Assembly (NCBI GenBank): GCA_973895155.1
Contig: OZ316899.1
Span: 13,519,934 to 13,583,933, forward strand
From: Marsupella aquatica
Lineage: Eukaryota; Plantae; Marchantiophyta
DNA: 64,000 nt
Reading direction: 5' to 3'
The position numbers and the translations under genes are program-made. The first letter of the stretch is position 1, and each line of letters starts with the position of its first letter. The notes beneath the pieces were generated by a model. That model was not told where the DNA came from. It ran no database searches and worked only from the letters and a program-made list of their open reading frames with translations. Positions 9,020 through 48,152 of this stretch are shown piece after piece.

Positions 9020-11659
9020 ATGTCGCACACGATCCTCTCCAGCTCGGCCATTCGATTCTGGACGCAGTTCCTATCTATCGGAAGGCACTTGGCCGATTCA
9101 TTGAAACACGCCAACCCGCGCCGATACGAGATCGAACGCGAATACGAGAGAGCCATCCGCCTAGCAGGACGACACCACTACGTCCTTAACTTTGACTACC
9201 CGTCTCAGAGCGAGCTTTACCGACCAGCTGAGGTATCTGGGTACTTCTTCAACGGAGACAAATATATCGAGTTCTGGGAAGCATTGCTTCGGCTTCCGGA
9301 CGAGGTCTTCAATATCCTGGGTACAATCGACCTGCAGCGACATCACTTCGACCACATCCCTGCCCAGGTTCGGGCTGTCATTAACGGCGAGTCCAGTACC
9401 AACCGTTCGACAAGGGCGTCCGCACTCGCTTCGGAGAACTTCTACCAGCACCTGCAGAGCTTCATGGGAACTCGGCCATCAACCAACATGACCAACTCAG
9501 CCGGACCTGTACCCGTACCCGTACCCGTGCCCATGCAACCCCAGCCTCAACTTCAGCTTCAGCCTCAGCCGCAGCCTAGCCAAACCCCACCACCTATCAC
9601 CCAGCCAGCACAGGTACGCTCCGTCATCAACGCTGTGGATCTTAGCGATGACGACGAGGCTACCCCACCCTTGACCAGGCGGCCCAGAGGAACAAGCGCG
9701 CGGGGGGCCGACACTATATCGTCCCCACCCCCTGCTCTGACCCCAGGAGCGGTCCCAGCAGACAACATAGTGACCGTGGCCGCCCCGGGCCCGTTACCAA
9801 CCGCAGTGGCACTCCCCAGGCCCGATCGGGAGGATGGGGAAGTATCACCTTCCCCGAGTCAGTCACGGGGAAAGAAGAGGAAGGAATCCGCCACTGCATC
9901 CGGGTTACCGTTGGCCACGGTAGCCGTAGCCAAGGTGACGATGCATCGCATGGGGGAAAACGTTCATAGCAACATCCTCCATCCCAAGCATGCGGTGTAC
10001 CTGAAGACTCAGGGATTTGAGCACCTCACCTCTCTCCCCTGGAACACTTGCAGGTACTACGGGGAGGACATGACAGAATTCGTCAAGAATTATGACGACG
10101 TACGTCAACAGACTCGGCTACGGGGAAGGAATATATCCCTCACAGAAGAACGGCTCAAGATGATCTTCGGGTTACCCGAAGGTGACCATCGAGTCGAATC
10201 ACGGGCTCCCGGGGGCAAGGGGGCCAAGTACCAATCTTCAAGTTTTCCCTCAGAGGGATCAGTAGACAACGGGTTCGTGATGAGGACCTGCCTCATGCCC
10301 GAGATAGCTGAGCGGCTGGAGTTCCAGAGGTACGCTCTCCACATGATGGAACCCCGGGGGGAGATCTCCGCCGCCCAGGTTATCCAGGTCGAGAACTATC
10401 GACCTAGGAAATGGGCGTCGTACTTCGCTAAGAAATTCCATGAAGAGATGGAGCGGCGAAGGAAGACGCTGTACATTGGCGGGAAGGCGTATTTCGCTAG
10501 CCATATCGAAATCATTCTTGAGTGGTACGCCCGGTTTGATCGACGAACCCTTCCCCGCATCAACGTTACAAAGCTGGTCCCAGCTAGGTGGGTTTTTCCG
10601 GCATTGGAGAGACCCGAGGCCCGAAGTCCAGTGGACACGCCAGCTTCACCCACCCCACCTCCACAAATAGCTATAATCGTAACCGAGGAGGCGCCGGAGG
10701 GGTCGGTCGTCGCAACCGTTGATGCGACCCAACTAGCCGGGCTAAGTACAGAAGTTGGTACAACAGAGGTCTTACCCGAACCCGGGTCTCCCAAGGACCC
10801 GCCGGTGGCAATTCCGGAGAACCGGACATCGCTGCAGGAGGACACTCCAGCCCCTTCCAACGTTATGTCCCCAGGGCTGGACGTCACTGCCCCGGCCCCT
10901 GCGCGTGTTGATGTCTGCCCGTGCCCAAATCCGGACAGGCACAACTTGGACCACCCGGAACTCTTCGTACAGGGTACGTTTCTGAACCGGCTTCTGGGAG
11001 ATTTCTCTCATCAAATTGCCCGGGATACCGGGGAGTTCATGGCCCGGAAGGTAGCCTATTTCTTCAATCAGGAGTTGGTTGCCGCCGTAAAGGCAGGTCG
11101 GGCCCAGTCGGAGGCCCTTCAGAGGATAGAGCGGTACCGGGTGGAGTCCGTGTACCTAAAGAACGAAGTGGCGGCTCAAGAGGCTGAGCTTCTGCAACTA
11201 CGACCCAAGGTTGCAGCCGCCGATGAGTTGTTAGCAAAGGCGTACGCTCTTACCGCCCTAGCCGAACAGGCCAAAGCTGGGAACGAGGCCGAGATTACAC
11301 GACTCCGGAACCAGATTGACAGTTTGAAGAAACAAGCTGTCACCTGGCAGAAAGACCTGGAGGAGGCCGAGGAGCGAGCCCAGCGGGACGCGACGGAGAT
11401 AGCCACGCTGCAGGCCGAGATGGCGCGGCTCCAAACCGAGGCCGAGAAGTAGGACCAGCTGGCGAGTAAACTGACGAGCGACGCCCAGCAGCTGGAGGAG
11501 GCATGTCAGGAGGCAGCAGAGGAGACGGACGCGGCGAGGCGAGAGAACGAATCTCTGCTGGACCAGGTCCAGCTCCTCAAAGCGGACAATGACAGGCTTC
11601 GAAGGCAGCGGGATGGCCGTTCCCATTCGGGCGGCTCTGGCAAGCGTGCCAGGCATTAG
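9020..11659 (+). CDS. LTR-encoded protein of family A (879 aa by read-through of one premature TAG at 11450; 810 aa as is)
   Basis: Long ORF wholly inside the solo LTR. Has a GFEHLTSLPW..EFV..TRLRGRNISLT..IFGLP domain and a C-terminal coiled coil. The stop codon is CAG in copy 1. Confidence 0.85.
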
Positions 11660-13122
11660 CGGCGGAGTAGGAATAGATTAGGATTAGGATTGGCTTAGTC
11701 AGGCTCTTGGGACAGGCACCTTCCTTAGGTACAGCAGCGCTGCCCTGCTGTCCAGCCTGCGTAGATTAGGATCTTCTAATAAGACACAGCCGTTTTCCGG
11801 CCTGACTGTCAGCTTAGTTAGGACCTTAGTCAGCGAATCTTCGGCGAGAGGACACCCCGTTCCTCGGCTCTTAGTATTTAGTGCACCCCTCGGTAGAGGC
11901 AAGGGGGGGGGTTTTTAGTTTCAGAGTCGAACATCCGCGGGACATGCGGGGAGTCCCGACCTCTGGGAATGACAGAGTACCAAGGGGAGGGGGTAGGACT
12001 AAGCTCGCCGGGCAAGTGCGGAGCCGGGCTCCGTTGTAGTGTGCACCCTCGGCCTTGAACCTGTGCATTCCAGGGCTGTCGTGTCAACTAAGTGTACGCA
12101 TATGTTCCCTTTGTAGTAAAATCCTTTCCCATCATTTTCCTTCGTGTAAATCGAGATTGTATGCATGTGTGCGCATATGTGTGTGGGCTTCTCGTATATG
12201 GGTGGCAGCGCCAGGCCGAACGCACTACCCGAGACGTGCACAGGGTGCAGCCTACGGGTAAGTGGTTGCGAGCACGGGTTGAGGACCTGTATCATCGAAT
12301 CCGGATCGAAGGCGGACAGCAGGAAGGCTTAGAAGCCCTTAAGCCGGGGTCGATCCTGCTATCGACTAAGGTACGTTCCGGCGGCGGAACACAAACCATA
12401 CCTAGGAGGTGTCCGTATTTAGCAGTATGCGCACTTAGCGCTAGTTTACGAGAATAAGGTGCATTACGTGCTTCCCTTCCTGCCCGAACCCTCAGATTTA
12501 CGAGGGATGTGCCCGTCTAAGCTGAAGTCTGAGTTAAGGCCGAAGCCTACGACGTGACAAGAAGCTCTCGGTTAGTCATACAGTGACCCTTGTGTATATT
12601 CATGTTTCCTCATGCCTAAGAGCTGAATAGAGTTGGCCTCACGGCTTAGTTCGCAGAGCTTGTGTATGAGATGTACTGTTTGTATGGCAAGTGCATGGTA
12701 TGACTCAGTCAGAATGAGTCATTTTGCTATTTGTGTATCGCATTAACTTGTGTGAAGAGTGCCCACATCAACCAGAAGGAAGGAAAGTAAGCAGGGGGGT
12801 GAGAGTTGGATGTGTCGAGCTGAGAGAGGTCTTAGCGGCTTAACCAGGCCTATTGGGGATCATTCCGGCGGCGGAATCCAAACATACCTAACAAGACGGA
12901 GGGGAAGACGAGGGAAGGCCTAGATTAGGCCGGCTACGTATCTCATGACCCGATGAAGGATCTGTCCAGTATATGTGTGTAAAATGTTAATAGTAGTAGT
13001 AGAAGGTTAGCAGCGTCCCATGCCGCTAAGCCGCGGAAACGGCCTCGCCAAGCGCGAAACCTGCGGGAATCGGCTTGAGCTGGGGGGTTTCTTGGGTTTA
13101 GGGAGCCATGGGACGCACCACA

Positions 13123-15253
13123 CAAATGCTAGGTGATATGGGGTAGTTGAGTTAAAGGATGATGGTCTATAACTTAATAGTGCAGCAGAGTGGAGGATGG
13201 CATGACCCCAAGCAGCTGTTGGTAGGTTCGTCTGCATTAGTAGGGGTTGGGCAATCATCTATAATCATTTAATCAGGGATTTGGCTATTCCATTTTGAAA
13301 ATGGACGTGAGGTATGGGGTACTGGACATCAATGCTTGTGGCCTAGCAAAACTCTTTGAACATTTTGGAGGTAAATTCTCTTGCATCATCCACTCTGAGT
13401 GTTTTGATTTGGTTTTCAAGGAATTGTGCTCTCAGTTTTAGTATGTGTGCTAGGAGTCTAGAAAATACCAAGTTTCTTGTAGATAGTAAGGGTATCTGAC
13501 TCCATTTTGTTGATGCGACTATGAGTGCCAGGAAGAATCGGAATGGGCTGCTAGGGGGGTCAATCGGTCCGCATACATCAGCGTGTATGCGCTCCAGGAA
13601 GCGTGGGAGCGTTCAGTTTTAGGTGGTGAGGGCCGGATTATTAGTTTGCCCTGTGAGCAAGCTAAACAAGGGGCTTTCATGGACGTAGGATGGACCATTT
13701 CCGGTATACCATGGGTTTCTCTGATAAGCTTCTGGAACATTGTCATTCTAGGGTGACCTAGTCTCCTGTGCCAGATCTTGGTGAGTGTGCCTTGGGGTGC
13801 TTCAATGTGGAAACTGTGAATTTTAGTGGTGTAACAACCAGGGGGTGATGCACTCAGGATCTCTCTGATCTTGGTGTTTGGTGGTTCCCCCAAGGTAATG
13901 TACAAGACCTCCCGTCCATGTTGGGTGCCCGTCTTAATATGTAGCTTGTTAGCACAGATATCCCCAAAGCTTAGTAAGTTTTTGGTTGCCTTTGGGGCGT
14001 ATATTGCAGACTCCACCTGAATTGTTGTTCCGCGGGGTAGGGTGACCAATGCTGGTCCAAATCCCTCTTCCAATTGATGCTAGCCCATAATAGTTGTAAG
14101 TTTTCTCTATGATGGTGTAATTTGCTTAAAGTATTCGTTATGCTTGAAAATGGAATGCAATGTACCACTGTTGACTATGCAGTGGGAAAAAATTTCTTTT
14201 ATACTAGAGTTGGTTCTTGATATGGCCATGTTTATAGATGGTATGAGTTCTGTAGATTCTAAGAAAGTCCCGTACGTCTTGGGTTCATTTTGTGCAGTAC
14301 TCTTCTTATATAGTTGTACTAGGTGTGCAGGGGCACGACAGAATTTTTGAATGTGGCCTTTAGTGCCACAACAAAAACATATAGGGGGGTTTTCGTATTT
14401 ATCTCTTTGAGCACTTTGCTGTTGATTTGTCCTCCCTCGGGGTTGAGAATTGTCTTGTTGCCCGTTGTTTCTGAAGTTGCCGCCATTGTTTTGGTATCTT
14501 CCCTTGGATCTGCCTCTGAAAGAGTTGCTTCTGCCCATGCGTCCTTTGAAGGAGCTTCCTCGACCTTTGTTTGTGTTTCTCCCCTTGAAACTGCCTTGGC
14601 TGCGGTAAGATGATCCCTCTCCCCTTTGGGTTGTGACATAATGAGATTCTATGTTTGTGACTGGGGGGAGGGTTTTGGGGGGTCACTTTTGGGAGTTCTA
14701 TAATAACAATAGCTGATGCTTCTCAGCCAGGAGCATATGGGCAATCAATTTGGAATATTTAGTGAATCACATATTGCGGTATTGAGTAGAGAGGATAAGA
14801 TGGGTAGAGTGAAGGGTGGATAGCGTTTTCCTGATCTGTTCTTCATCATTTACGGGGTGGCCACATATGGCCAGTTGTGATACTATCCGGAATAGTTCAC
14901 AGTTGTAGTCCGCAATCATCTTATGGTCTTGGACTCTAAGATTGATCCAATCGTGTCTGGCTGCTGGTAGGTATATGGTGCAAGTGTGGTCAAAGCGTGA
15001 GTGAAGTTCTTCCCAGAGGACCCTCGGATTGTATTCATTCATATAATGTTGCTTCAAGGAGTCACTCAAATGGTGTCTAATTAGTATCAATGCCTGTGCC
15101 TTTTGCTAAAGAGTTAGGCCATTCACTTATTATTGTATCCTGTAGATTCTTTGAAGTTAAATGAGCTTTAGCATCAAGCCACCAGGACAAGTAGTTGGCG
15201 CCATCGATGCTAAGTGGTTGAAATAAGAGTTTCTCCATAGAATTCGTTGACAT
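13123..15253 (-). pseudogene. Bianca gag-PR-INT fragment with stops and frameshifts
   Basis: ORF fragments 14767-15090, 14107-14538, 13519-14073 and 13007-13258 are colinear with the 61370-63498 copy. Confidence 0.88.
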
Positions 15254-15576
15254 TTTTCTGGATTCTTGTGGTTTAATTTCTTATTGATAAGCTCAAGGTT
15301 GGTATTGTATTTGAATGTCCTATCTCAATGTCATTTGATTGGTGAAATTGAAGGAATTGAGGATGAAATTGCAAATCGTGGTTAGTGAATTGGAGTTTCT
15401 TATCTCATTGCTTGATTTTGTATCCAATTTGCTTCATTCTATGACATCCTTTTCCACTGGATGATTCCAGTCACCGTTGCACCTTCATCTGCCTTTAATC
15501 CTTCCCTAAATGATGCAAAATGTTGCTCGGGAGGGAAAAAAGTGTAATCCCTAAAAATTGATTAATTCAATCAGCA

Positions 15577-15590
15577 TCGTGCTGATAACG
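15577..15590 (-). promoter_or_regulatory. Bianca-type PBS (CGTTATCAGCACGA)
   Basis: Directly abuts the LTR and matches the motif characteristic of the Bianca lineage. Confidence 0.85.
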
Positions 15591-15742
15591 TGTTGTAAGG
15601 TATGAAACAACTAACTATTTCATTCATCATCCCACCATTACATATAGCTCCTATGCTGGCTAGGTAGTTAGGCGGTTGGACTTGGCCTAACTGTAGTAGG
15701 GTTTAACCCTAGGTAGGGTAGGTTTAGGTATGGGTTATAACA
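15591..15742 (-). repeat. Bianca 5' LTR, 152 bp
   Basis: TGTT...AACA termini. Homologous to 57355-57505. Confidence 0.9.
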
Positions 15743-18700
15743 TCTTTGACTTTATAGGGTCCAAGCCACTTGGTATGAAGCTTCCCCTGAAACAACATGT
15801 AAAAGTTATCAAAAAGTAGAACCAAATCACCTGGTAAAATCTTCACTTCTTTGAGCTTAGCATCATATCTCTTTGCACGGCCTACTTGTTGTTTCTCTGT
15901 CTCAATCAAAGCATAATTGCGATCTTCTTCTAGCTTCTCCAAATTCTGTAACCTGATAGTCTGACTTGACTCCTCATCCAGCCAAGTGGTATCAGATATC
16001 CGGTAGGTGGGTACCTCAAATTCCACCGGGACAATACTATGGAGTCCATAACCAAGTAAAAAGGAGTTTGCTTAGTTGTGATTTTCTCAGCTGTCCGATA
16101 TGCCCATAATGCGGAATGTAATTTAAAATCCCATTCTGACTTGTGTCCAACCACCGACTTTGGTAAGATGCATTCCATCAACCCGTTAGTTTTCCCAGTG
16201 AGTCCATTAGCTTTAGGATTGTAAGGGGTGGTTTTTCTATGTCAGATCAGATATGTATCAGTGAGACTTTGGATACTATTGTTGAGAAAATGAAGACCTC
16301 TGTCACTGACCAACTCCAAAGGGCAACCAAATCTTACCAAGATATTTTCAAAGATGAATTTAGTTGCTGTCTGAGCATCATTTTTCCTGGTTGCTCTAGC
16401 TTCCACCCACTTTGTTGCATAATCTGTCGCAAGAATGATGTATCGATTTTTGGTTCTTGTCGAGGGAGGTTGAATGGGGCTCACAAAATCTATGCCCCAC
16501 TTCTCAAAAGGTGCTAAAGGCATAATAGGAGTTAAAGGCCAATGAGAAGTGGAAGTAGGTTTACCCATTCTCTGACAGGGATCACAAGTTTGGATGTAAG
16601 ACTAAGTAGTCCTATACATAGTCGGCCTCCAGTATCCAGCATTCCGGATTTTCTTCACAGTGTTCATTGATGCATAATGTCCACCAACCTCTTCTGTATG
16701 CATGGCCTGAATGACAGTTTGATCTCCTTCTTCTCGAGACATTTCTTCAACTCTTGGTCTGGAGTCTGCTTGTACAACACACCTTCTTGTAAGGTATAAG
16801 GCCCAACCTTATACATGAAGATTGCTTGTTGCTCCTTGTTCAAATTCTCTCGTAAAACACCCAAAGTCAGAAGTTTGATGATATTTGCATACCAAGAATC
16901 CTCCTCATGAACACATAAAATGTCTTCATCCGGAAATCGATCATTCAATGGAGATTCATTTGCCTCACCGTCTAATCTTGAGAGGAAATCAAAATTCTCA
17001 TGATGTTTTCCAGGTCAAACTTCCACAGTAAAGTTGAATTCTTGTAGTAAAAGAACCCATCTAGCAATTCTTCCCAAAATGTCAGTTTGATTGACTAAAT
17101 ATTTCAGCGAAGAATGGTCCGTGTGAAATATCGTATGATATCCCAAAAGATAGTGTCTGAACTTCTTACAAACAAACACCACTGCCAATGCTTCTCTTTC
17201 CGTGACAGTATAGTTCTTCTCAGCAGGGTTCATTTGTCTACTAGCATAGAAGATAGGATGGTCCTTACCGGCTTTGTCCTTCTAACTGAGGACTGCCCCA
17301 ACACAAAATGCTGAAGCGTCAATGTACACATGAAAGGTGGTATCAGCACAGGGGCAAACACCAACTTATCCTTCAAATTCCGGAAAGCTGTTTGCCGAGC
17401 TTCAATAAAGGCATATTCAACATCCTTCTCAACAACTGAGTCAGGGGCATTGCAATCTCAACATATTTACGAATGAATCTTTGGTAGCATCCCACATGAT
17501 TTAAAAATGCTCTCAACTCTCTTAAATTAGCAGGGGGTTGAAGATTTTGAATAATCTTCACTTTTTTAGCATCTACCTCTATCCCTTTTTGAGAGATCAC
17601 ATGTCCCAACAACACTCCTTTTTGCATCCCATGAAACATTTTTGTGGATGTAAGCAAAGGCGAGCTTCTATGCATTTCTGGAAAGTGAATCTCAGCTTTT
17701 CCAGATGATCCTCTTCCATACTGAAGACACATAAATCATCAATACAAATTTCCAAAAATCTATGAAGGTATTCTTGAAAAATAATCATCATGATCCTTTG
17801 AAAGGTTCTTGGGGCATTGTAGAGTCCAAATGGCATTACTGAGAAAGCATATGTGTCGCAGTCCGTAGTGAATGTGGTCTTGTCACGGTCTTCCTCCCTA
17901 ACTGAAATTTGATTGTATCCAAAGTAACCATCAAGGAAGTTGAAAAGGTCATGTCCCGCAACTATATCTAAAACAATGTCAATAAAAGGTAAGGGGTAAT
18001 GGTCCTTCCTGGTGGCCACATTCAACTTCCAAAAATCTTGACAAACTTGGATTTTAACTTTTCCGTCCGGCCTTGGTTTCTTGGGTACAATGACTATGGG
18101 AGAAACCCACTCACAGCTTAGGACTGGAAAAATGAATCCGGCTTGGGTTAGCTTATCAATCTCATCCTTCACCATTATGGAGTATTTTGGATTAAGGCAA
18201 TATTGCCTTTGCCTAATTGGAATTGTTCCTTCAACCAAGTCTATCCGGTGTTGTCCCAGATAAGAGGGTATGGCTTTGATATCAGTATGGCTCCATGCAA
18301 AGACATCCCTATACTACTTCAGCAATTCCACATACTTAGTTCTCAAGTCACCCTGAATATGATTGCTGATATTCAAGAATTTTCCAGGTTCAATCTCCAC
18401 CTTTTGGCAAGCTCTTGGGTCTACTATCCCTTCAGTAAAACCCATAGGTTCAATAGTCAATCCTTTTGCTTCTCCTGGTAAGAACTCCGCGTTGACACCT
18501 TCTTGGTCACTCTTGACTTCCTCCCCATCCAAGGTCCTAGATTTGACTCCAGTACTTAGGTAGGAAGGGTTCTGGCGTCATCCAAGCTATAAGCCTGCTT
18601 CAAAGTCCTTTTCCGGATCAGAGTATAAAACCGAAGCTTTTTGGTTGATCGAAGTGTGATTGATCCGGATTTGCTGATGTTTTTGGATTCCTACCAAGTT

Positions 18701-21135
18701 CCGGAATTTCAGTTATGGCGGTTATTTTCAGAATTTCTCCCATCTCCACGGGAGCATCAAATTCAAAAATATAAAGAAATCACACGTCATCTTCTTTTCG
18801 TCGCTTGGTCTTGTTTCTGACTGAATCAGAGTCTGTCCATGTGATCGTGGAATTTGAAGTATAGCCTTTGTCCATCTCTGTCTCTCCCTGGTGAGGATCT
18901 ACGTCCCAGCTTACAATCACTCTAGGGGTACCAAAAGTTAATTCTTTCATAGTCCAATTAACTTTCACCTCGACACCATACAGCCAGGGCCGTCCTAACA
19001 GGATTGGAAAATTGGAAGGAGAGGAGGGTCGAATAATTACATACACCAAAGGAAATGTAATGCCTCCAATTATTGTATCCACATTCTGCAAAATTCCAAC
19101 TGGAGCAACTCGAGTTTGGTCTGCCATTCTCAGGAACCGATCAGTGGGCTCAAATTTTTCAAACCCAAAACTGTATGCAATAGATTTCATCATGAGGTTG
19201 ACACCTGATCCTCCATCAATAGGAACTCCCCGAATGGAACACCCAACAATTTGAATGGTCAATATAGGTTGTCCTCTATCCAAAGCCTCAAGGTGGAAGC
19301 AATTATGCACATCTATAGTTGGCAATTTGGCTTTTCTCCTTCTTCTACCACCTACTAATCTGATCTCCCTTAAAAATTGAGGGTTAATTCTAATCAATTC
19401 TCCTATTGTGATGTTGGCTTTGACATTGTCAATGTCTGCCACAATGTCATACGGTTGGGATTTCCCCAATTTCAATTTCCCTTCCTCAATTGAAGGCACC
19501 ACTGGGGTAATTGTCTTATTGATTTCAAGTTTCACTTGTAATTTGTGAGCCAAATCTCTTTGACTTCTGCAAAGATGTCCGGTAAGAAGTATTTAAGATC
19601 GTTACGATCATATGCTCCATCATTCATGTGGTCCACCCCTTCTCTTTCAGTTGCTACAGGTTGCTTGGCCTTCTTCAATTCCTTCTCAAGGGGCTTAACC
19701 AACTTTTTATCCTTAGATTGAGTAACTGCAAACACGTTTAGTACTCTGTCTCTCTCTCTCTAACTCTTTTGTTGGGTTGGCCAAGTTCCTCTTCCTTGAC
19801 TAAGTGAGGTACCTCAATGTCAAACACAAGGCCTTGTGGTCCTCCATTATTCATATTTGGAATTCTGGTGGTAGCAGTTTTAATTTCCGGATTCATATCT
19901 AGATCTGCACTTCGAAATAGTTTTCCCCGTTCTTTCTCCTTTTTCTTCACTATGGCAACTTGGGGTGTAGAATACTTCTTTGGGTTCCGATAAGTTGGAG
20001 AGGTGATTTCCACAATTTGGACATGGTCCACCTGTCCTTCTGGTAGCCACATTTCCTTCTCATAACACACAAGCTGAACATTAGATTCAGGTTTTTGCGT
20101 ATCTTTGACTGGCTCTTGTACATACCTTACCAACATTTTTGGCTTTGGTGGCACAGGACATTCCATCAGTAAATGACCTTCCTTACCACAATTTCCACAC
20201 AGAGAGGTCATTCCTTCAGGTCTCTTTGGCCACGAACATTGTGGTGAAAAATGGGCTTGATCCCCACAATTCCAACATACACCTCCTGGCAAAGTTCCTC
20301 TTGGTGGGTATCCTCCTGGTGGTGCCATAGGTGGCTTATAGACAGACCTATTAGGTCCCCCTTGGGGTCTTATTGGTGGTCTAGGGAAATATTGTACAAG
20401 GGCTTGAGGTTGAACTTGATCCACTGAATCTTCATACCTCTGGAACTCTGGATCACATTCTATCTCACCTTCATAGTCTTCACCTGCAATGTAATTCACT
20501 TGCTTTGAGCTAGGGCATTCATTAGGATAATGACCCATCTTCTTACAAACAACACACCACACATTGTACCTCGGTTGTTCTAAGGGTCTCTATGGTGGGT
20601 TATTCATTGCCAGGTTTACAACCAATCCTTTCATCTGTTTGGCAAGACCTTCCATTATGTCTACCAATTTGCCTTCACTTTTTGCAGTTTTTGTAGGTTT
20701 AACAGTGGACACTTTTTTGGGTTTCACCTCCTCCTCATCAGTGCTGTCTATATCATCTCCACTATCATCGCTCTCACTGGATGTATCGTCTTCAGAAGAG
20801 GAAGAATCAGCTTGTTTTTTTTTTTTTCTTAGACTTTTTCTTCTTTTTGCTTTCTTCTTCTGTAATCTCTTTTGCCAGCTGAGACCGTTGGGAGAGATTG
20901 GCATCCTTGCAATTAATTCCTTTCGCTCCTTCAAAGGAAAGTGATATTCTTCAAAATCCATAGTCTCCAATGCATGCACGTACTCTAGTTGGAAGGCTCT
21001 AGAAGCATTAAAGATTGTATATGGTTTGCTTCTTGTGTTTAATGAATGTTTTTTGTGCTCAGAATCTTCTGTAGTACCAACATATCCATTCAAATAATTA
21101 TGCTCCTTCCATTGTGTTGATTGCACCGCTTTCAT
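15743..21135 (-). pseudogene. Ty3/Gypsy family C gag-PR-RT-RH-INT (Athila-like non-chromovirus), degenerate and cut at the integrase C-terminus by Bianca
   Basis: Three CCHC knuckles, PR IDGGSGVNLM, RT (DHYPLPFID, FLDGYFGYNQI, ICIDD), RH (NYTVTEREALAVV, HTDH), INT (PFEKWGIDF, SDRG, ALWAYRT, WLGPY). There is no room for a second, archaeal-type RNase H between RH and INT. Confidence 0.92.
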
Positions 21136-21277
21136 CCACTACAGACTTGAATTGATTCGAGGTTGCTCGCTTTCAAGGACTTCCTCTCAGGAGGGTCTCT
21201 CTTGAAATGGTCTCCTTTGATTACTTCAATCTCTGCACAACTCAAATCTATCAAAGTACCTTCACTTCTTAGGTCAC

Positions 21278-21295
21278 TCCTTGACAACGGCGCCA
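21278..21295 (-). promoter_or_regulatory. PBS, tRNA-Asp-like (TGGCGCCGTTGTCAAGGA), Athila type
   Basis: Resembles the Athila PBS TGGCGCCGTTGCCGGGGA. Separated from the LTR end at 21303 by CGTTTTT. Confidence 0.85.
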
Positions 21296-21302
21296 AAAAA
21301 CG

Positions 21303-23124: not shown

Positions 23125-23139
23125 CACTAGTACATTTTT

Positions 23140-23665: not shown

Positions 23666-23849
23666 TTGGACACTGGTTATCTTGAGGTTCTTAGTTGAGT
23701 GGGGTTGAGAGAAGTATTAGAGATACTTTATGGAATATGTTTTATGCAAGAGTGGACATTGAGAAACAAATATAGTGCCGAGAAATATATAATGTCGGGA
23801 AAGTAAACACAAATATGGTAGGGGGCTAGCTATAGTTGCTACTTACTAG

Positions 23850-38100: not shown

Positions 38101-38181
38101 GCCCGAGTGATCTTCGGGGGCTTGTGTCGGTTTTGTCGGGTGGCGTTTGTCCCTGGCTGTGCTATAAAGCCTTTAAAAAAA
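35117..38181 (+). mobile_element. 5'-truncated L1-clade LINE: ORF2 remnant (RT, zf-RVT) to 37782, 3' UTR and short A tail
   Basis: Motifs KSLGIDG, NWRPLTML, QTGF, KLDFMKAYDRV, GVRQGCPLS, LFADD, YLGCP, FIWRL and CERC. In-frame stops at 35962 and 37369. A7 tract at 38175-38181. Confidence 0.9.
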
Positions 38182-39667
38182 TGTATTAAAATCCTATACC
38201 AATAAATCCCAAAAGCCCTCAAAGCCCTAAAGTCCTTCAAAGAGAATTGGGATCAATTATAGTAAAAGAGTAAATCTAGGTACCACTTACTAGCCAAAAC
38301 ACCTTGACTTATCCTTGCATCCATCACTCAATGTTGAGCAAGTTAAGGCCCTATAATTACATTACTATACAACTTAGCTTTATAAATCTAGGGTGCAATA
38401 AATTAAGCATGCAATCACAACCATATTTTAGTTATCTTAGGAAATACAAAGTCATGAACTAACCCCAAAATTGTAGTTGCGAATAAGGAACTTGCAAGAG
38501 GCCGGGTAACATATACACAATATGCCATCCCGTTCACGGTGTTACCTAAAAAAACCCGGATATATTCAAAATGACCACAAAAAAGTGACTACAACCCTCC
38601 CTTCTATTACCCCACCCAATTACTTAATTCCATGCTCCACATACAAACCCAAACACCCAAACTAAACCCAAAGTAAATAGATTTGACCTCCTATGGGACC
38701 AAAACATGGAATCCGTTATAGCTGATCGAGGGGTCCGATACTAAAACAAACGGAAGCAGCATTGTAAAAGCAGGAGAAAGAAAAGCAAGGAGGGGTCCAA
38801 AGCAAAATGCATCAGAAGGTCCGATTGTAGGTCCAATTCTTTTGGCTTCGGACATTGCGTTGCATAAAGTATCGGAAACAATAGACCTGTTTTCAAAAAA
38901 TAAGTCCCGATGCGGATGCGAAGATCCGGGCATCGGGCCAAGCTTCGCATTCCGTGTTTTGCAAGGCCGGGAGGCTCAGGTAGACGTTGGTGGGCAAGGA
39001 GAGAGACATGGTGGGAGGAGGATCAGGTGGTGGGGACGGGGCTGGACCCTCTCGGCCCTATGATGAGATTATGAGGGTGATTTTTATGCGTAGGGCAAGA
39101 CTAAGTGCTGAGGATGCAGAGAGAGTTGTGCCACTTCTTCAGACCTTGATTGATGGATCCAGGATTGAGTTTTAGGGAGGCTGCAACCATTGCTGCAGAG
39201 AGAGCTGTAAAGAAGAAGCGAAAGGAGGCAAAGAGAGGCAGGGAAGATGGTGAGGAATCCCTCCTCCCCGAAAAAGAGAGAGGAAGCTTCGTGTGATGCC
39301 TAGACAGGAATCACTCGGCCAGTTAAGTGGGTAAAGCAGGAAGGCACCCTAGGAACACCTTAGTATAGGGACAAAACAAGGAAAATATAAACAATTAGGG
39401 GCAACCATGGAACCCGGGCTGAGGCCGGAGGTAAGGACGCTGAGGGTGAAAACTCGATTAGGGTTAGGGCGCGTTAAGCGTCGGCGGCTAGGAAGGATCA
39501 ATGGGAAGAAGGACTGGCAGAGGAGAGGGGTAAGGAGCGCTTGCAGGAGATGGTGGCTCATTTGCGAGCACGAACTAGGCAGACTACTACGGGAGGCCAA
39601 CTACTGTCAGCTGCTTAGGCAAGCACTCGGGGAGAGAGTAGATACCGACGATCGACCTAAGGAGGGT

Positions 39668-42600
39668 ATGAGCAACGTCAATCAAGCGGCACATTTCTGG
39701 GGATGCCTGTTCGAACGGGCAACTGAGTACATCAAGACTTACGAGGACGAGGACGAGGAAAGGGCAGCTCGAGAACGGTAGGAGCTCGCTCGATTGTGGG
39801 AGCTGCAGAAGACGGCTTTCTTAGGAGGCGAACTCATCAAGGACGAGTTCCTGTGGACGCCTACTTCCAATCAACTCGACGATCTTCTGTTTTGCAAAGA
39901 CAGCGTCGTCGGCATTCGAGAGGCCATCAAGAACTGCAATGACATACACTGGGAATTAAAGGGTAGCACGGAAAGGTGGACCCAGGCAACGGTGCTAGGA
40001 GAAACCTCCACGGCAGCAGAGATGAAGAGGAAGGGAGCCGTCAACGATGAAGCCACCCCGGCAAAAAGAACGAGGTCGGCGGCACCAAAGAAGCCAGCCG
40101 GGCAGCAGAGCAGGAGGCAGGGAGAAGCCGAAGAGGAGGAGGTCGATCCCATCAAGGCCATTCCAACCAGGGATGACACCTGGAAGGGCTGGGCGGCAAC
40201 CCTACCGGTGGAGGTGCAACTACATTTTGCACGGGAGGAGGATGCATGCTTTACGGCCATGCAGACCAAGAAGTACCAAGGCTTCATGGCCGGATCCGGC
40301 TTAGAGGCCTTTGTAAGATTACCATGGCTGAAGCCGGAGGTACCGGAGTCAGACCTATTAGAATTCGTGGGGTCATGGGAACCCGAGACCAATTGCACGA
40401 GGATATATGGGAAGGATTTCTATCTTACTCCCAAGGTAATTGCCGAAGTGTTTGGCTTGCCGATAGGCAATAAGACCAAAGTTGATACTAGGAAGACCTT
40501 GCCTGACAAGGAGTTCCGGTCGTTCCCCGGGCCATCAACGAAGAATGGCTTCTTCCGGAACACTTGCACCAACCCGCACATAGGAGAGATGATCGACTTC
40601 TTGCGGGTGACCATGCATTGTAACTTGCCGAGGGCAGAGATCGGCAAGGCACAGGTCTATCTGGCAGAGAGGCCAGACCCAAGCCGGGACTACAACGGGT
40701 ACCTCCTCAACCAATTGAAGAAGATCTTAAAGGAGGAGCAGCAGGTAATCGGCATGGGGAGCGTGTCGCGGCTTGGCTATCACATGCCGCTGTTGTGCCG
40801 GTATGCCAGAGGTCAGACTTTTGCCCCAGTACTTCCCCTACAGGTAAGGGCACCCGAGGAAGCTCCAACGCCGAGGCCATTGGCTGAGAAGCCTCAACCA
40901 CCTGTTAGCCCTACGATCGAGCAGGTGTTTAGGCCCAGGAAGGAGGACTTGCCGATGCAGCAACCAGGCATGCAGAGTCTGCTGAAACTACTGGAGAAAG
41001 AAAAGAGATCGGCATCGGCAACAACAACGGCAACGGCAACAATGCAGGACACTACTACAGAGGTAGGCCTACACCGGCTCACAAGAGAAAACCCCTTTGC
41101 TGGAGACAAGGAGAGAATCAGGCCGGAATCCAAGCCAGGTGTTCGAATGTATGTGGGAATCTCAAGCTCCGAATTTGAGGCAGAATTGCCTGAAGCTCCT
41201 ACCGACGAAGAGGAGAGGGAGAAGCCGGACGTCCAAGAAGTAGAGGAGGCAGTGGAGGACTGCAGCCATGATAATTCCGGCTATGGGTCGGACCATCACG
41301 TTCCAGGAGTAAGGACCTGTGGCCGGTTTGTCCCCACACTTCCAAGGGTAGTGCGAGGGGACCCCAACCAGCAGAGTAGCCCTGAGTCTCCCCCACCAGA
41401 TGTTGCTCCCCTGAGCTTTGACGGCATAAAACAGACGGTGCAGGAATTTCAGGAGCGAATCAGGCAGGAAGAGGAGGCAGCCCTGGCTAGGGAAAAGGAT
41501 TTACCAGGAGGAGATTGGCCGGAGGACATCAGGCGGCTAGCCGAAAAAGGAAGCAAACCTCTAGCCACGATTGAAGAGATCCGCAAGACGGCTTGGGAGC
41601 AGAGGCCGCGATGGGCGATGCCGATCACTTCTACTTACTCCACCTACGCTAAGAATAGAGCCATGGAGTATGGTGAGATGTGTGGGGAACTTGCGCTCGG
41701 CATCTTTGGAGAGGAGTTGGAGGTAGGACCCTTTTTCCATAGGGAGCAGTTGGAGAAGCACCAATTAGAAGAAGCGGTGGCTTTAGAGAGAAGCAAGAAG
41801 GACGAGGTCATTTGGCGGCTTAGGAGGATGGAAGCCGAGATTGAGATCTAAGGGCGGCCAAGAAAGCCCAAGATGAACTGCGGATTAAACGGCATGAGCT
41901 GAACATCATGCAGGGGCAGTTGGACACCGCGCAGGTTGATAATCAGAATATCAAGGATAAACTGACTCAGACGCAGGGAGAGTTGGCCGACACGATCAAA
42001 GAGAGGGAGAAGTGGAAGCGAGAGCTGAAGAATACAGAGGAGGCCCACATAACAGCCAATAGCCGGGCCATGGCGGAGACCCAAAGAAAGGAATGGGCGT
42101 TGAAGGGGGAGCTCGAGAAAATCCGCGGAGCCCTTGAGCAGAAGGAGGCCAAGTTAGGGAAATCCTATCAAGGGATTATGGCGCTGCAGCAGGAGCTTGC
42201 GTCCCTGACGGCCAGCTTCAAGGCCGACCTAAGGGAGAACGACGAGATACTCGATCAGACTTACGCCAAGATGAACCAGATGGAGTCTGTCATCATTGCA
42301 GAGCTCGACAAGGAGCTAAGAGCAACCCGGGAGGAGAGGACTACCTTGAAACAAGAACGGGAGGAAGCCCAGAAGGAACTAGAGGAGGCGCGCAAGGACC
42401 TGGATGAGACCCAAGAGGAGTTGGAGGAAATCACGAGGAAGATGGAGAACCTCCAGCGGCGGGCCGACAACCAAACGGAGCGGCTGAAGAAACAAGCCGC
42501 AGTATTTAAGTGCTTGTCTTCATCAGGCCCAACTCCAATTGGGGCAACCAAGTTACCAGGAGTGGTACTGGCCGAAGAAAAAGCCGCGCCACCTGCATCA

Positions 42601-43041
42601 GTGCCGGAAGTAAGTGGGAAGGGGAAGGGACCAGCTGCCAAACCAGAAAAGAAGAAGAAGCGGAAACCTTCAGGGTCAAGGAGTAATCCGACTCCACAAG
42701 CCGTGGTAACCAAGGAGGTAGAACCAGCACCATCCTCCGGCATAAATACGACAATAGATCCCGCTATCATCACAGGTGGGGGTGGTGCGGCCCAAGCCGA
42801 ACTACTCAGTAATGAGGCCGGTATCCCAGATCCGCCTCTTGAGCAGGCCAGGGAGACCGTAGCCGAGGCTGAGGCCGTAACCGATTCCCGAGCCAATGCC
42901 GACGCTGATGGTGGACCCAGTCAGGCCGATGGAGAGTTGACTCAGTCAAGGGCAGGTAATCTGTCAGAGAATGAACCTACGGCAGTGGCTGAGGAGGAAG
43001 CGTTGGGGGCGTCCATTAAGGATCCACCACCGGTGTCGTGA
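39668..43041 (+). pseudogene. LTR-encoded ORF of family B (~1120 aa; one stop at 39779, one frameshift near 41845)
   Basis: Starts MSNVNQAAHFW. Has a GLEAFVRLPW..EFV..TRIYGKDFYLT..VFGLP domain, a long coiled coil and a KKKKRK basic patch. Confidence 0.85.
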
Positions 43042-43308
43042 TGGTGCAAGGGCGCCATTCCTTTTAGGGAGGGCGGACGTGGAGGGAGGAGGCGTGAGTG
43101 GGCAGGGCGGGCGCTGATCTCCAAGTTTAGGATTAGGATCAGGACCAGGAGCGGCCCTGACACTTAGCTTAGTGGGATTGCGGTTCCACTGGTAGGAGCA
43201 ACACTTGTGCTCCTGCCTTGCTGTACATAGGTAGATTCAGGCAAGTAGATTACTGTTAGGTAGATTAGGCTTACAATGCAAAGAATGGCGGATCCACTAC
43301 CAGGATAA

Positions 43309-43651
43309 ATCACCCTATTCATTAAAAGTGTATTTTATTTTGTTCACTTTTAGGCCTCTAAATGTTCACTTTTTGATCTCTAAATGTACACTTTTTAAAC
43401 CCAAAAGGTACACTATGGTATAATACTCTACACCTAAATGATCAATTGTAAACTTGAGGTGACAAAAATGATCTTGACTAGAAGGAGTCTCATCCTAGTT
43501 CATTTACAAAAGATGAACATGGTGGTATATCTAATGGCCATCAACTTTGTTTCTTGCCTATTTGTACACTTTTTGAAGGCCAAATGCACACTTTTTATTG
43601 CCCAAATGTTCATAAATTGAATAATAATTCACTTTTAATGAATAGATTGAT
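43309..43651. mobile_element. MITE-like insertion, 343 bp, TIR ATCAnnCTATTCATTAAAAGTG, TSD ATAA
   Basis: Absent from the other two B copies (empty site CAGG-ATAA-GTACC near 8459). ATAA at 43305-43308 and 43652-43655. Confidence 0.88.
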
Positions 43652-46600
43652 ATAAGTACCTGGGCAGCGGGGAGCTCAGGGCCTCTTCTTTAGCAAGTTT
43701 TTAGTTTGCACCAGCCGGGCTGGGATCAAGTAGTACGAGAAGCTCTCGGTTAGTCATACAGTGACCCTTGTGTATATTCATGTTTCCTCATGCCTAAGAG
43801 CTGAATAGAGTTGGCCTCACGGCTTAGTTCGCAGAGCTTGTGTATGAGATGTACTGTTTGTATGGCAAGTGCATGGTATGACTCAGTCAGAATGAGTCAT
43901 TTTGCTATTTGTGTGTCGCATTAACTTGTGTGAAGAGTGCCCACATCAACCAGAAGGAAGAAAAGTAAGCAGGGGAGTGAGAGTTGGATGTGTCGAGCTG
44001 AGAGAGGTCTTAGCGGCTTAACCAAGCCTATTGGGGATCATTCCGGCGGCGGAATCCAAACATACCTAACAAGACGGAGGGGAAGACAGGGGAAGGCCTA
44101 GATTAGGCCGGCTACATATCTCATGACCCGATGAAGGATCTGTCCAGTATATGTGTGTAAAATGTTAATAGTAGTAGTAGAAGGTTAGCAGCGTCCCATG
44201 CCGCTAAGCCGCGAAAACGGCCTCGCCAAGCGCGAAACCTGCGGGAATCGGCTTGAGCTGGGGGTTTCTTGGGTTTAGGGAGCCATGGGACGCACCACAC
44301 TTCGCAAGGCAGCTAAGGAGGCTGAGAAGAAGAGAGTGGAGGATTTAAAGCGAAAGGAAGCTAAGAGAGCTCTGAGGCCTGAGCTAGCCCTAAACTCAGG
44401 TGGCTCCCCAATGCCGAGACGATACAATCTCTTCCGCAGCCAGTTCAAGCAGGTGGTGAGGCCAATTTGGGGCCATTAGATTACTGGGGAAGGAAGACTG
44501 AGGAGGAGAAAGGTTGAATTTGAGAGCAAGTGAAGGAGCGATTCAGGAATGGGGCCTCCCTTGATGACAGGTTCTTGAATAAGAGGATATCAGCTTCACT
44601 TTCAGACATGCGAAATCATCAGAGAGAGAAGTTCAGGAAGTACCTTGCTGATTTGCCAATTGATTCAGAGGTGGTGAGGGAGCAGGGCTGTCCAGATGTG
44701 CTCTCCCCAAATGAGTGGGCAGCTTGGCTTGAGGAGGAATTAGCAATCCGAGCCTGGCAAAAAAAGAGACAATGGGACCACGAAATCAGCTTGGCAGAGG
44801 AGAAGCGGAAGGCTGGGGAGGAAATTGACATCCTCTCCCTCCAACAGAACCTACGGCCCAGTGGGGGGCTCAAGCAGTACGATTAAAAGAGCCACCCAAG
44901 GACATCATCAAAGCATTGGAGCGAGTCCAAGGGCGGCCCATCGTCACTCACCGCATGGGGCAAGGAGGCTCCAATCGACTGAAAGCAGAGTTCGTAAGTG
45001 CCTTCTCCCTCCTCCCTAGCTCCTCCCCCCCAACCACCTGACCTTCTCTTGCAAAGAGTGACTCAATTTCTGCTGCCGAATGCCTTTATGCCGTTTCAGC
45101 CCGATGTTTTTTGCTCTCGGGACTGTTCTGTCCGATACTCATCCAAAGCTTTTAGCATCGGACCTAGTATCGGACTTGTTGTTATGCCATTTAGGGTTAC
45201 CGGGATCCAATACTGTTCCGTTGCTTTAAGTATCGGAAATAGCATCGGACCCCTCATAAGAACAACGGGTTTTTTTAAATGTTGCTCTTTCACTCAATTA
45301 GGGGTATGGGTTTGCATTCTTCAGTACCCTAAGAAGGCATGGGACCCCTTACAAGAATTGGGAAAAGTTGGGCCGATGCAAAGACTAGTTTTCATGCTAA
45401 TGGGTTTCTCGTTTGGTATTGTGATGTGTCAGGAACGGGACTGGGATCGACCTATTGGGCCGTCAGAGAGGGAGTTAGCAAAGAGGGATGGACCCTGAGC
45501 TCTTAAGCTCCACCTTGAGGAGGAGCTGGGAGAGGTAATTGGTGTTGAATTGGCCCTATATAGGTTCAATTTTTTTTTGGTTGTGGTCAATATTAGAGAG
45601 CTTTCAAGGAACTATGTTTTCAAATGCAATTTAACCCTACTTATGTATTGTGCAGGACGAGGAGACAGGGTCTGATGAGGGTGAGGAGGGTGAGGGAGAG
45701 GAGGGTGAGGGTGAGGAGGAGGGTGATGGTGAAGAAGGAGAGGATGGCGAGGGAGAGGAGGGAGATGATTCTGAGGCGTCTGTGCCCTTAGAGGGTGCGG
45801 CAGAGCGATCGGGGAGGGTGCCCCGAGTTACCCCTACCCCTGTAGTCCCTCATGTTGCCCCCACATCAGCACAGAGGGGTAGGTCACATGGTGTTCATGG
45901 TGTGGCCTCCCATCAGTCGGGAGTGTCACGGAGTGTGAGGCCCAGCCCCTCAGGGGGTAGTAGAGGTGGCGCGGGACCAGGCCATTGCTCTGGAGTACTA
46001 TCCGATACACCTGGCTCTTCTCGACGAGTGGGTCGTGACATGGAGGATGGTGGCTCTAGGGGGCGAGCGCCATCACGTGAGTATGGTGGGAGTACCGCAC
46101 GGCATGGGCCACAGACAGCATTTGCAGGGGATGCATCCCATCACTCTCAAGGTCTACCAAAGGGGGAGATGGCTCCTTCCACTCTGCCATGTCAGGGGGT
46201 TTAGAGGCATCTATTGCACCTCAGCATCCTAGCGGTGCATCTAGTGGGTCAGGGTCCCGGCCAGCATCAGGCCAACCCACTGGTGAGCAGGTGGTTGCCA
46301 CGGTTGTGGGCAGCCAGAGAGAGGAGGGGTCTTGTGTTCCTGGACCTGTACCACCCCCTCGTTCTCGCCCGAAGAAGAAGAAGGGACGCAACACACCTTT
46401 TTAGAGCTTAGTGGCATGAGCTAGATATGTAGTGCATGGTAGCTTTTATACTAGCATATATATGTACCATCTAGTATAGTAAGCTACCTAGGCTACTACA
46501 TATTGTACATACCAGGGGGTTTCCCTTTTTGAATATGACATTTTGAGCTTGTACATATAACATTCTTTTGCATCAATCATAATTTAACCCAATTTGGCCC

Positions 46601-46689
46601 ATTTCACCATGAAACTAACCCTAAACCCTCAAATACCAACCCCATGAGGCCCACTCTTCTATCAAGAAAGAATCACCCTTGTCCGTTAC

Positions 46690-47270
46690 TAGTCCAATGC
46701 AATATACATCGGAAAAACACCTAATTATCCCATGCTTTCAGTATCGGGACATCCGATACTCTGCTCTTCGAAAAGTCCTATACTAAATGCATCGGACCCC
46801 TCGTCCAGCAAGCATGACAAAATTCCAATGTCCGATACCGACCACTTTGGACCATCCAATATAAAAACAATCGGATTGTCTGATACATGCAACATTGGAC
46901 CTTCCGATCTGTAATCCAACGGATGTTGTGATACTAAACGCATCGGAAACTCCGATGCTATAAATTACGCACATTGCGAAGCTCTAGGTAACAGAAATTC
47001 TGATATGATATGTATTGGACGCCAAGTTTTGCGATTAAGGTCACCCAAGTGGATATCCGACTCTCTTTACATCGGATACAAAATAGTCCAAAATGGTTTG
47101 CTTCGGAAATACCGATGTAGAGAGAAACGGAAATTTTGAAGGTTGTCCGATGGTCGGTGTCCGATATGTGGAGAATGGGAACATACGAAGCGGGTTACAT
47201 CGGAAGTACCAAATTTAGTGTGCAACTTTCGTGAAGGGATCCGATGGAGATGGCATCGGATAAAGGCCCG
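46690..47270. repeat. CACTA right subterminal repeats (TCCGAT/ATCGGA)
   Basis: Same hexamer array as at the left end. Confidence 0.85.
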
Positions 47271-47287
47271 AAAATGTACTAGTGGTC

Positions 47288-48152
47288 TCCGGACAGGTTC
47301 CGGATCTTTGACTGGATCCGGTTCTGGACTTTGAACTAACCTCTTCCGGATCCTGGGAGGTCGCACTTCAACAATCGGCTCTTCTTCTGATTCTATCCCC
47401 TCTGATTGCTACCGGTCTGGATCTCCAAGTTGAGCCAACATGGCTTGGTTCTCATACTCCTCTGCTTCTTTGTCTGTCAGCACCGGGTCCATGGAGTACA
47501 GGTTAGCCAGTTAGCACAAAAGGGAGGTGGGGGTCTTCAAATAAAGATTTTGGACTTCCTTAGCAATGACCTCCTCCAACACCTTCGCCCAAGAAATCTT
47601 CTTCTCACCAACGTAGGAAGCGGCAATGGTATTCCCAATCCGGATTGTAACTTGGCGAGGTTTGGCACGGGATAGAATTGGAAACAGGATGGACAGGACA
47701 TCAAAAAACTCCTCATTACAACACTGAGACACCTTCCAACCATCCTTTAGATCTACTTTGCCATCAAAATAGTTGTTGGCAAAATTCTCCTTCAAAGTTA
47801 GAAAGCTCTCTCCTTTCAATGGCACATCCAACAATGATGAAATGACAACCGCTGTCCACTTTTCCGGATTTCCTCTAATAGAATCCAGAAATTCCAAAGT
47901 AAGTGTCGCACAATTCCGGACCTCCTTCACAAACACTACACTCTGGTAACCCCATGGTAACTCAAGTAGCTTCGCACAGCCCCTCACCTCTAAATTGTTA
48001 TGAAGTCGGGCCTTCCTTTCCGGATCCGACGGGATCTTGGGTCGCAATGGTTTCTCATTAACCATGACAGTCTGCTCCTTGGTCGTACGCTTAGGCATCG
48101 TCCGGATTCCGGATTTGTCTAGGGAAAAATCCGGATCCTTTCTCTTCACCAT
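47288..48152 (-). pseudogene. N-terminal half of the family C LTR ORF (whole ORF ~550 aa, two in-frame stops)
   Basis: Contains GCAKLLELPW..IRGNPEKWT..DGWKVSQC..ISWA. ORFs 47511-48152 and 47067-47366 are in one frame. Confidence 0.8.

Follow-up and report, generated by a model that had tools for sequence, protein, structure and literature searches.

Several groups of plant Ty3/gypsy retrotransposons carry extra open reading frames (ORFs). As reported in PMC6317226, 57% of Ogre elements contain the plant mobile domain (PMD), 23% of Retand elements contain Transposase_28, and 16% of Athila elements contain Athila ORF-1. A review of plant extra ORFs distinguishes classes that comprise 5′ or 3′ internal ORFs only (PMC7264820). 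PMD-A clades were reported to be gypsy-encoded in angiosperms, and the ancestry of retrotransposon PMDs versus host PMD genes "remains fully open" (Ikeda et al., PMC5418596). A 2026 survey of Tat elements recorded liverwort Tat elements without the extra RNase H and left an ORF in the long terminal repeat (LTR) unmentioned (PMC13468544). VANC21, the anti-silencing protein of VANDAL21, binds DNA at short motifs in its own element; the DUF1985 domain of VANC is structurally similar to PMD-C of MAIN/MAIL1, and VANC multimerises via a coiled-coil helix (10.1101/2024.09.27.615353, PMC13547354). Here we analyse a stretch of 64,000 nucleotides from the liverwort Marsupella aquatica (contig OZ316899.1, positions 13,519,934 to 13,583,933; termed the window), in which two LTR families, A and B, carry a sense ORF inside the LTR itself. 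On balance we lean slightly towards considering A and B as LTRs of non-chromovirus (Tat/Athila-like) Ty3/gypsy elements which contain an accessory gene within the LTR, the product being a probable element-specific DNA or chromatin regulator. A description of an ORF within a plant LTR was not found in the openly accessible literature, where text matches were essentially restricted to papers on the sag gene of mouse mammary tumour virus (MMTV) and surveys give internal ORFs only; within this literature, the claim of a preliminary description of this DNA that the architecture had not been reported is borne out.

Comparison of the window with itself at the DNA level, by which the repeats were delimited, revealed a nest of retroelements rather than three tidy elements. 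Family A is represented by the following features:

1–3451, plus strand: 5′ LTR of family A, cut off by the start of the window, 98.9% identical to 9103–12559, with the terminus GTGACA at 3451
3464–3482, plus strand: primer binding site (PBS) of family A, TGGCGCTAGATGGAGGGGG, 12 nt beyond the LTR end
3692–7071, plus strand: gag, protease and start of the reverse transcriptase (RT) of family A, with Pfam Retrotrans_gag, zf-CCHC and aspartyl protease
8554–12559, plus strand: solo LTR of family A, 4006 bp, TGTGAC...GTGACA, with the target site duplication AGAAG at 8549–8553 and 12560–12564
9020–11452, plus strand: ORF of the A LTR, 810 residues, with the core at about residues 300–510, followed by a linker and a coiled coil

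Family A thus displays a direct repeat, an adjacent PBS and a gag-protease-RT region, while the downstream copy has the structure of a solo LTR placed inside a B LTR. The PBS string TGGCGCTAGATGG, 12 bases 3′ of the end of the 5′ LTR, precedes the gag ORF. The solo LTR represents a clean insertion because AGAAG is present on both flanks as a perfect 5-bp match and because the minus-strand B copy, being uninterrupted across the insertion point (30990–30994), provides the empty site. The ORF copy in the 5′ LTR (2–2551) contains in-frame stops at 464–466 and 1001–1003 and is about 70 codons longer at the C-terminus, extending to the equivalent of position ~11660. As a separate observation, the gag-pol ORF of family A (3692–7849) passes in frame at 7072, within the RT motif ...KICICQD, into coiled-coil sequence of a B LTR; this chimeric junction between A-internal and B-LTR sequence (7060–7085) could have arisen by deletion, recombination or template switching.

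Family B is present in three copies, all of which are solo or partial:

39292–44299, plus strand: solo LTR B(+), 5008 bp, TGTGATG...CACCACA, with the target site duplication CTTCG at 39287–39291 and 44300–44304
39668–43041, plus strand: ORF of the B LTR, ~1120 codons, with a TAG at 39779–39781 and a frameshift near 41850–41908
30428–35119, minus strand: LTR B(−), ~85% identical to B(+), lacking ~50 bp of its 5′ end and adjoining a fragment of a long interspersed nuclear element (LINE)
7072–8553, plus strand: 3′ portion of a third B LTR, on the upstream side of the inserted A solo LTR and resuming at 12560–13122
12560–13122, plus strand: 3′ end of the third B LTR, ending in CACCACA, 98% identical to 43735–44300

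In B(+), TG...CA termini are flanked by a perfect 5-bp duplication of CTTCG, and the LTR measures ~4.67 kb once an insert of 344 bp is subtracted. This AT-rich insertion (43308–43652) is located just 3′ of the ORF and is absent from B(−). In the third copy, the stretch 7072–8466 is 96% identical to 41922–43308 and corresponds to the part of the B LTR that encodes the coiled coil. The A and B LTRs share no DNA similarity; in this respect, as well as in the TGTGA start and the CA end, the preliminary description holds, and the termini are accompanied by 5-bp target site duplications. At the 3′ terminus of the B LTR, ~650 bp (43652–44299 versus 30428–31079) are 95.9% identical whereas the remainder including the ORF is only ~84–85% identical, which suggests that the 3′ end is under strong constraint or has recombined. 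The 4.2-kb gap between the head-to-head oriented B(−) and B(+) is partly occupied by a putative 5′-truncated LINE-like RT ORF (35130–37780, plus strand; judged by eye), which adjoins B(−) and is separated from B(+) by ~1.5 kb.

The ORF of B(+) starts at the ATG at 39668, is open from after the TAG to 41851 (ORF 39794–41851) and, following the frameshift, continues from 41908 to 43041. Its counterpart in B(−) has two in-frame stops, yet is open across the frameshift point of B(+), and the intact B ORF would therefore comprise ~1120 codons. The core peptides previously quoted for A and B are indeed present, namely in the ORFs 9020–11452 and 39794–41851, the B core occupying about residues 136–345 of the latter. 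Over a core of ~190 residues, the A and B proteins are related with a BLASTP E-value of 6e-20 and 29% identity over 185 residues. In both proteins the core is followed, as had been stated, by a linker and a coiled coil, more precisely by a proline- and acid-rich stretch and a region with only weak matches to coiled-coil families. A common N-terminus of the form MS....A..FW, also claimed for A and B, has no statistical support since BLASTP returned no alignment of the N-termini at E ≤ 100. The B ORF was further compared codon by codon between B(+) and B(−) by the method of Nei and Gojobori. The ratio of nonsynonymous to synonymous divergence (dN/dS) amounts to 0.19 for the whole ORF at a dS of 0.49, to 0.087 for the core, to 0.25 for the linker and to 0.37 for the coiled coil. 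The LTR ORF has been under purifying selection, and the B ORF thus functioned as a gene during the divergence of the two B lineages.

The noncoding parts of the LTRs contain a single TATA motif each and clusters of the pentamer TTAGG, which is often embedded in GATTAGG or TAGATTAGG:

8912–8917, plus strand: TATAAA of the A LTR, the sole one in this LTR, 108 bp 5′ of the ATG
8615–8690, plus strand: TTAGG cluster at the 5′ end of the A LTR, five sense-strand motifs
11678–11822, plus strand: TTAGG/GATTAGG cluster just 3′ of the stop of the full-length A ORF, five motifs
39395–39620, plus strand: TTAGG/GATTAGG cluster on the 5′ side of the B LTR, sense strand
43064–43354, plus strand: TTAGG/GATTAGG cluster just 3′ of the B ORF stop, six motifs
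2570–2714 and 31096–31241 (minus strand): TTAGG/GATTAGG clusters in further A and B LTR copies

The sole TATAAA of the B LTR is found at 39386, 282 bp 5′ of the ATG. TTAGG occurs 10 times in the noncoding A LTR (2.4 expected) and 12 times in the noncoding B LTR (3.2 expected), and in both cases none of 1000 dinucleotide shuffles reached as high a count; the A and B ORFs themselves show no enrichment. The densest 300-bp TTAGG bins of the window coincide with these LTR segments in every copy, and the clusters recur in two LTR families that are otherwise devoid of DNA similarity. On the basis of the motif distribution, this pattern would fit a protein that binds to its own element.

To find relatives of the LTR protein, 1.84 billion representative proteins were searched with a profile derived from the A and B cores; 72 proteins had E ≤ 1e-3, 25 of them E ≤ 1e-10. 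The clusters of 20 of the 72 were looked up, and 14 of these 20 were named, all being from liverworts (Calypogeia fissa and Riccia sorocarpa); the family is thus seen so far in liverworts. Its members bear the names "unnamed protein product" or "hypothetical" and carry no Pfam domain; in the longer ones, a variable N-terminus and the core precede a low-complexity linker and a coiled coil. When the A core, the ORF of a third candidate unit termed C (see below) and the core alignment were used as queries in word-indexed protein searches, the outcome was blank or consisted of three already known matches only. In a Logan contig (L005) an A-like ORF (P0002) is present, and the DNA match of this contig to the window is short and weak (72–76% over ~115 bp).

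The position of the ORF relative to the LTR was examined at seven loci in the genomes of Calypogeia (six loci) and Riccia (one locus, L003). Two loci of Calypogeia fissa (L001 and L006) show both LTRs, as a repeat of 94–96.5% identity which spans the ORF start. By alignment, these LTRs start with TGTGAGG, the 5′ flanks being different and the 3′ copies having an identical flank on the side of the polypurine tract. The ORF is followed by the PBS string of family A, found identically ahead of gag (at 13656 in L001 and 14151 in L006), and then by gag, protease, RT and integrase. Located between the LTR start and the PBS, the ORF is therefore doubled at both ends of the element and retained in solo LTRs. 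In a second, upstream element of L001 and in L002 and L007, the ORF lies 1–3.5 kb 3′ of the integrase on the same strand; in L003 and L008 it lies 5′ of a PBS-like site or of RT and integrase. Where the ORF precedes gag or RT at these other loci, the distance is 2.5–8 kb, and the strand is always the same. L002, L003, L007 and L008 are consistent with an LTR position, with one side of the element visible only. The previously proposed maintenance of the LTR location across diverged elements accordingly holds in Calypogeia fissa (L001 and L006), with one-sided consistency in Riccia. The objection that homologues might be mostly internal to their elements fails because the ORF is situated within the repeat, upstream of the PBS. 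The L001 LTR carries arrays of CGCTTA/AAGCGC-type hexamers instead of TTAGG clusters. Two further observations concern single family members. At L004 (Calypogeia fissa, 9932–11431), a member of the P0037 clade is present with no Gag-Pol within 10 kb on either side and may represent either a solo LTR or a domesticated copy. In the gene models of P0053 and P0058 (from Riccia sorocarpa and relatives), the family core is joined to part of a DDE_Tnp_4 (Harbinger-type) transposase; these models are probably chimeric predictions across nested elements.

The Pfam scan of the A, B and C ORFs returned no match at E ≤ 1 apart from coiled-coil noise, and neither PF10536 nor PF04195 was matched by A, B, C or 35 family members at E ≤ 0.1. 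Colinear matches to PF20167 (profile positions 16–87) were found for P0037, P0058 and P0053, with scores of 12–17 bits against a gathering cut-off of 45; the P0037 clade provides one of the two best matches, which is still sub-threshold. None of the three Pfam families suggested for comparison in the preliminary description (PF20167, PF04195 and PF10536) is therefore reached by A, B or C. An AlphaFold2 model of the A core, calculated from an alignment of 35 rows, has a mean predicted local distance difference test (pLDDT) value of 92.4 and a predicted TM-score (pTM) of 0.88. Foldseek detected a single match above noise in the PDB, 9lnj_A, the structure of VANC21 in complex with DNA, at a probability of 0.99 and an E-value of 9.9e-3; the alignment covers 244 columns with a query-normalised TM-score of 0.53. 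The second-ranking match had an E-value of 2.5, and a fold search of BFVD gave nothing meaningful. The A core is thus predicted to be a well-folded domain, and among solved structures the VANC21-DNA complex is its sole relative. The model also suggests a relation to PMD at the fold level, via VANC21 only. The postulated likeness of the core to a 'putative plant transposon protein' domain is accordingly retained at the level of the fold (VANC21) but not as Pfam membership, PF20167 being sub-threshold.

A third family, C, had also been described as sharing the LTR protein. The features concerned are:

47511–48152, minus strand: C ORF, 213 residues, borderline distant homologue of the A/B core
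45427–48671, minus strand: unit C as presumably delimited in the preliminary description, TGTGATATC...CCTGACA, 3245 bp, starting at a break in the 3′ LTR of a chromovirus; putative end
15500–24443, minus strand: gypsy element related to A and termed Asp-primed, with the PBS TGGCGCCGTTG at 21285–21295 and its 3′ LTR replaced by a copia fragment
21303–24443, minus strand: 5′ LTR of the Asp-primed element, TGTGAC...CTACCACA, 3141 bp, putative start

The C peptide is present as quoted, while its homology to the core is borderline in profile tests and absent from BLASTP, pairwise comparisons of C with A and of C with B being not significant. A hidden Markov model (HMM) built from 81 domain alignments of database relatives matching the A/B-core profile ranked C as the best non-A/B ORF among the 837 ORFs of the window (hmmsearch 9.0 bits, E = 0.04), a score reached by 2 of 5000 shuffles. 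With hhalign, C aligned to the core at P = 4e-4 and a probability of 35% over 138–146 colinear columns, the next unrelated ORF having P = 0.064. The alignment is colinear across the whole core and matches the landmarks LPW, EF, NGY..C and W. Judged from these sequence profiles, C is probably a true homologue of the A/B core. That the C ORF is unrelated to the family, its motif likeness being due to chance and the window containing two families, appears doubtful but is the best-surviving of the rival explanations. It would agree with the BLASTP result, the low hhalign probability, the lack of homologues in the word-indexed protein search, the absence of a coiled coil after the C ORF, the missing LTR evidence for the unit and a single-sequence AlphaFold model of unusable quality (pLDDT 41.9). 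These points are opposed by the first rank of C among the non-A/B ORFs, by P-values of ~4e-4 from two methods for a candidate named in advance and by the colinearity over the entire core with its landmarks.

The assignment of unit C as a 3.2-kb LTR is upheld for its TGTGA start, which is located exactly where the minus-strand chromovirus 3′ LTR ceases to match its 5′ LTR, but not by a repeat, target site duplication, PBS, coiled coil or verified end. Neither a second copy nor a PBS or an adjacent Gag-Pol was found for it in the window, the flanking pentamers differ (TACTT upstream, CATCA downstream), and a resumption of the chromovirus LTR beyond unit C, which was sought to place its end, was not found. 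The Asp-like primer and the A-related Gag-Pol attributed to C belong to the separate minus-strand element at 15.5–24.4 kb, two elements having been conflated. Its protease is 42% identical to that of A (E = 4e-53), and its AT-rich LTR holds an intact coiled-coil ORF of 252 residues (22337–23095). A remnant of the core domain was not detected in this LTR, either by tblastn with 83 family proteins or by the HMM on translations with X at stops. The idea that unit C is the LTR of the Asp-primed element was rejected, as this LTR and unit C share no DNA or translated similarity and the PBS and Gag-Pol are those of the 15.5–24.4 kb element. The PBSs are presumably of the Asn- or Asp-type, by analogy with Tat1 and Athila; ARAGORN found no tRNA genes in the window. 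Instead of three families sharing an LTR protein in the window, two (A and B) are confirmed and C is borderline.

Further elements of the window are a chromodomain gypsy element, a CACTA remnant and two copia fragments. The chromodomain gypsy element (49201–56201, minus strand) contains gag (53467), integrase and a chromodomain ending at 49201. Its LTRs have only ~107 bp in common (48672–48778 and 56095–56201) because unit C interrupts the 3′ LTR, the rest of which is missing. A CACTA-type transposase remnant at 27464–29891 (minus strand) matches DUF4218 (E = 5.6e-30) and Transposase_21. Two copia-type fragments with gag and integrase (13127–15312 and 61382–63557, minus strand) are 84.6% identical and lie 48 kb apart.

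Consistent with the LTR position, the selection and the predicted fold, we propose a first scenario for the function of the A and B LTRs as carriers of a gene for an element-specific regulator. Each LTR, solo LTRs included, would represent a self-contained transcription unit, and we infer that the transcript from the sole TATAAA might serve as the mRNA of the LTR protein because this single motif lies ~100–280 bp upstream of the ATG. Read-through past the LTR would generate the genomic RNA. The LTR protein might oligomerise through its coiled coil, bind to the short TTAGG/GATTAGG motif clusters in its cognate LTRs and thereby act as an element-specific transcriptional or anti-silencing factor, like VANC on VANDAL or like PMD proteins.

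Several points weigh against this proposal. Every copy of the LTR ORF in the window is broken by stops or a frameshift. No Gag-Pol is present next to any of the three B copies within the window, and the LTR status of B rests on its termini, its target duplication and analogy. The label Tat/Athila-like non-chromovirus for A and B is our own assumption. Sequence similarity of the LTR protein to VANC21/DUF1985 or PMD was not found, either with Pfam or in a profile search of PDB sequences, which gave coiled-coil noise. The function would derive from a moderate fold match (TM-score 0.53) and from the TTAGG pattern, which was noticed post hoc. Moreover, plant promoters often lack a TATA motif, so that the ORF could belong to U3, R or U5.

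In its most far-reaching form, the proposal would imply that every LTR, solo LTRs included, is an autonomous gene with promoter, ORF and terminator for a coiled-coil factor of the VANC/PMD fold, which recognises GATTAGG-type clusters and counteracts silencing. We consider this complete version to be rather unlikely. If true, it would constitute a retrotransposon counterpart of the VANDAL anti-silencing system and a pre-angiosperm, retroelement-borne branch of PMD/VANC proteins, with a bearing on the origin of host PMD genes such as MAIN.

The main alternative to a role in chromatin or transcription is one in the particle or in nuclear import. The LTR-borne gene would then serve replication by encoding an additional particle protein with a structural, nucleic-acid-chaperone or nuclear-import role, as proposed for Ogre ORF1 and other extra ORFs. 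In Ogre and Retand, extra ORFs with PMD or Transposase_28 are frequent and have no known role, multimeric structural proteins typically contain coiled coils, and the genomic RNA would have the ORF as its first cistron should transcription begin at the TATA motif. However, VANC21, the only relative of solved structure, is an anti-silencing factor with sequence-specific DNA binding, motif clusters are found on both sides of the ORF in A and B, and the data contain no hint at RNA binding or particle assembly. We regard a replicative role as improbable, although it comes close to the complete autonomous-gene version in its likelihood.

Still less probable is the view that the family consists of host genes or gene fragments captured by LTRs, or of domesticated copies, which have no role for the element. 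Both capture and domestication have been proposed in papers on PMD and VANC, and the L004 member is found without Gag-Pol in its vicinity. Against this view, the position and orientation of the ORF are constant in diverged elements of at least two genomes (those of this window and of Calypogeia fissa), and selection acted while the LTR DNA diverged to a dS of 0.5. A capture event at the origin of the family is compatible with the regulatory gene proposed above. Finally, the possibility that the ORF is an ordinary 5′ or 3′ internal extra ORF, the repeat borders being misread or created by rearrangement or assembly, finds some support in the dense nesting of the window with its chimeric A-RT/B-LTR junction at 7072, in the B copies without nearby Gag-Pol and in several database loci showing a single element side, but is already largely refuted and highly improbable given the A ORF in both LTR copies upstream of the PBS, the solo A LTR with its perfect target duplication and matching empty site, and the same arrangement with aligned LTR starts and the PBS after the ORF at L001 and L006 in an independent assembly.

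A gene inside the LTR has consequences that would follow for elements of the A and B type: it is present in two copies per full element, thousands of accumulated solo LTRs could stay expressed genes, and the promoter region and the accessory protein are inherited together as one unit. The fold link to VANC21 offers a testable function, namely element-specific DNA binding and anti-silencing, and a bryophyte retroelement family with a PMD/VANC fold would add a deep data point on PMD ancestry. In practical terms, a profile of the family, which is now unannotated, would improve the annotation of liverwort genomes.

Compared with the known systems, the LTR-borne ORF is a real variant of the extra-ORF theme of plant gypsy elements. 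The OTA extra ORFs (Ogre ORF1 with PF10536, Retand with PF04195, and PMD-A) share with A and B a sense accessory ORF in a large non-chromovirus gypsy element with very long LTRs, and a domain of the PMD/VANC kind and of uncertain function that recurs within the lineage. However, they are internal, situated either in the stretch from the 5′ LTR to gag or in that from pol to the 3′ LTR, and have been described in seed plants, whereas the A/B ORF lies within the LTR upstream of the PBS, occurs in liverworts, is present twice per element as well as in solo LTRs and has no Pfam match to PF10536 or PF04195. In PF20167 (Transposase_32), three family members show weak matches around an EF..N...T.V.G..I.L....F.L motif, yet their 12–17 bits are to be compared with a cut-off of 45, and A, B and C do not match at all. 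VANC21 (DUF1985) of the Arabidopsis Mutator-like element VANDAL21 is the sole solved structure similar to the predicted core of the LTR protein; it is transposon-encoded, has a coiled-coil multimerisation part beside a globular DNA-binding domain and targets clusters of short motifs in noncoding parts of its own element, and motif clusters also flank the A and B ORFs. In contrast, VANC21 originates from a DNA transposon, is said to be dicot-specific and has no detectable sequence similarity to the LTR protein, whose DNA binding would be assumed by analogy. The sag gene of MMTV likewise is a protein-coding ORF within the LTR of a reverse-transcribing element, but it belongs to an animal retrovirus, encodes an unrelated protein and is located in U3 overlapping the 3′ end of the genome, whereas the A/B ORF extends over 2.4–3.4 kb after the only TATA motif of the LTR.

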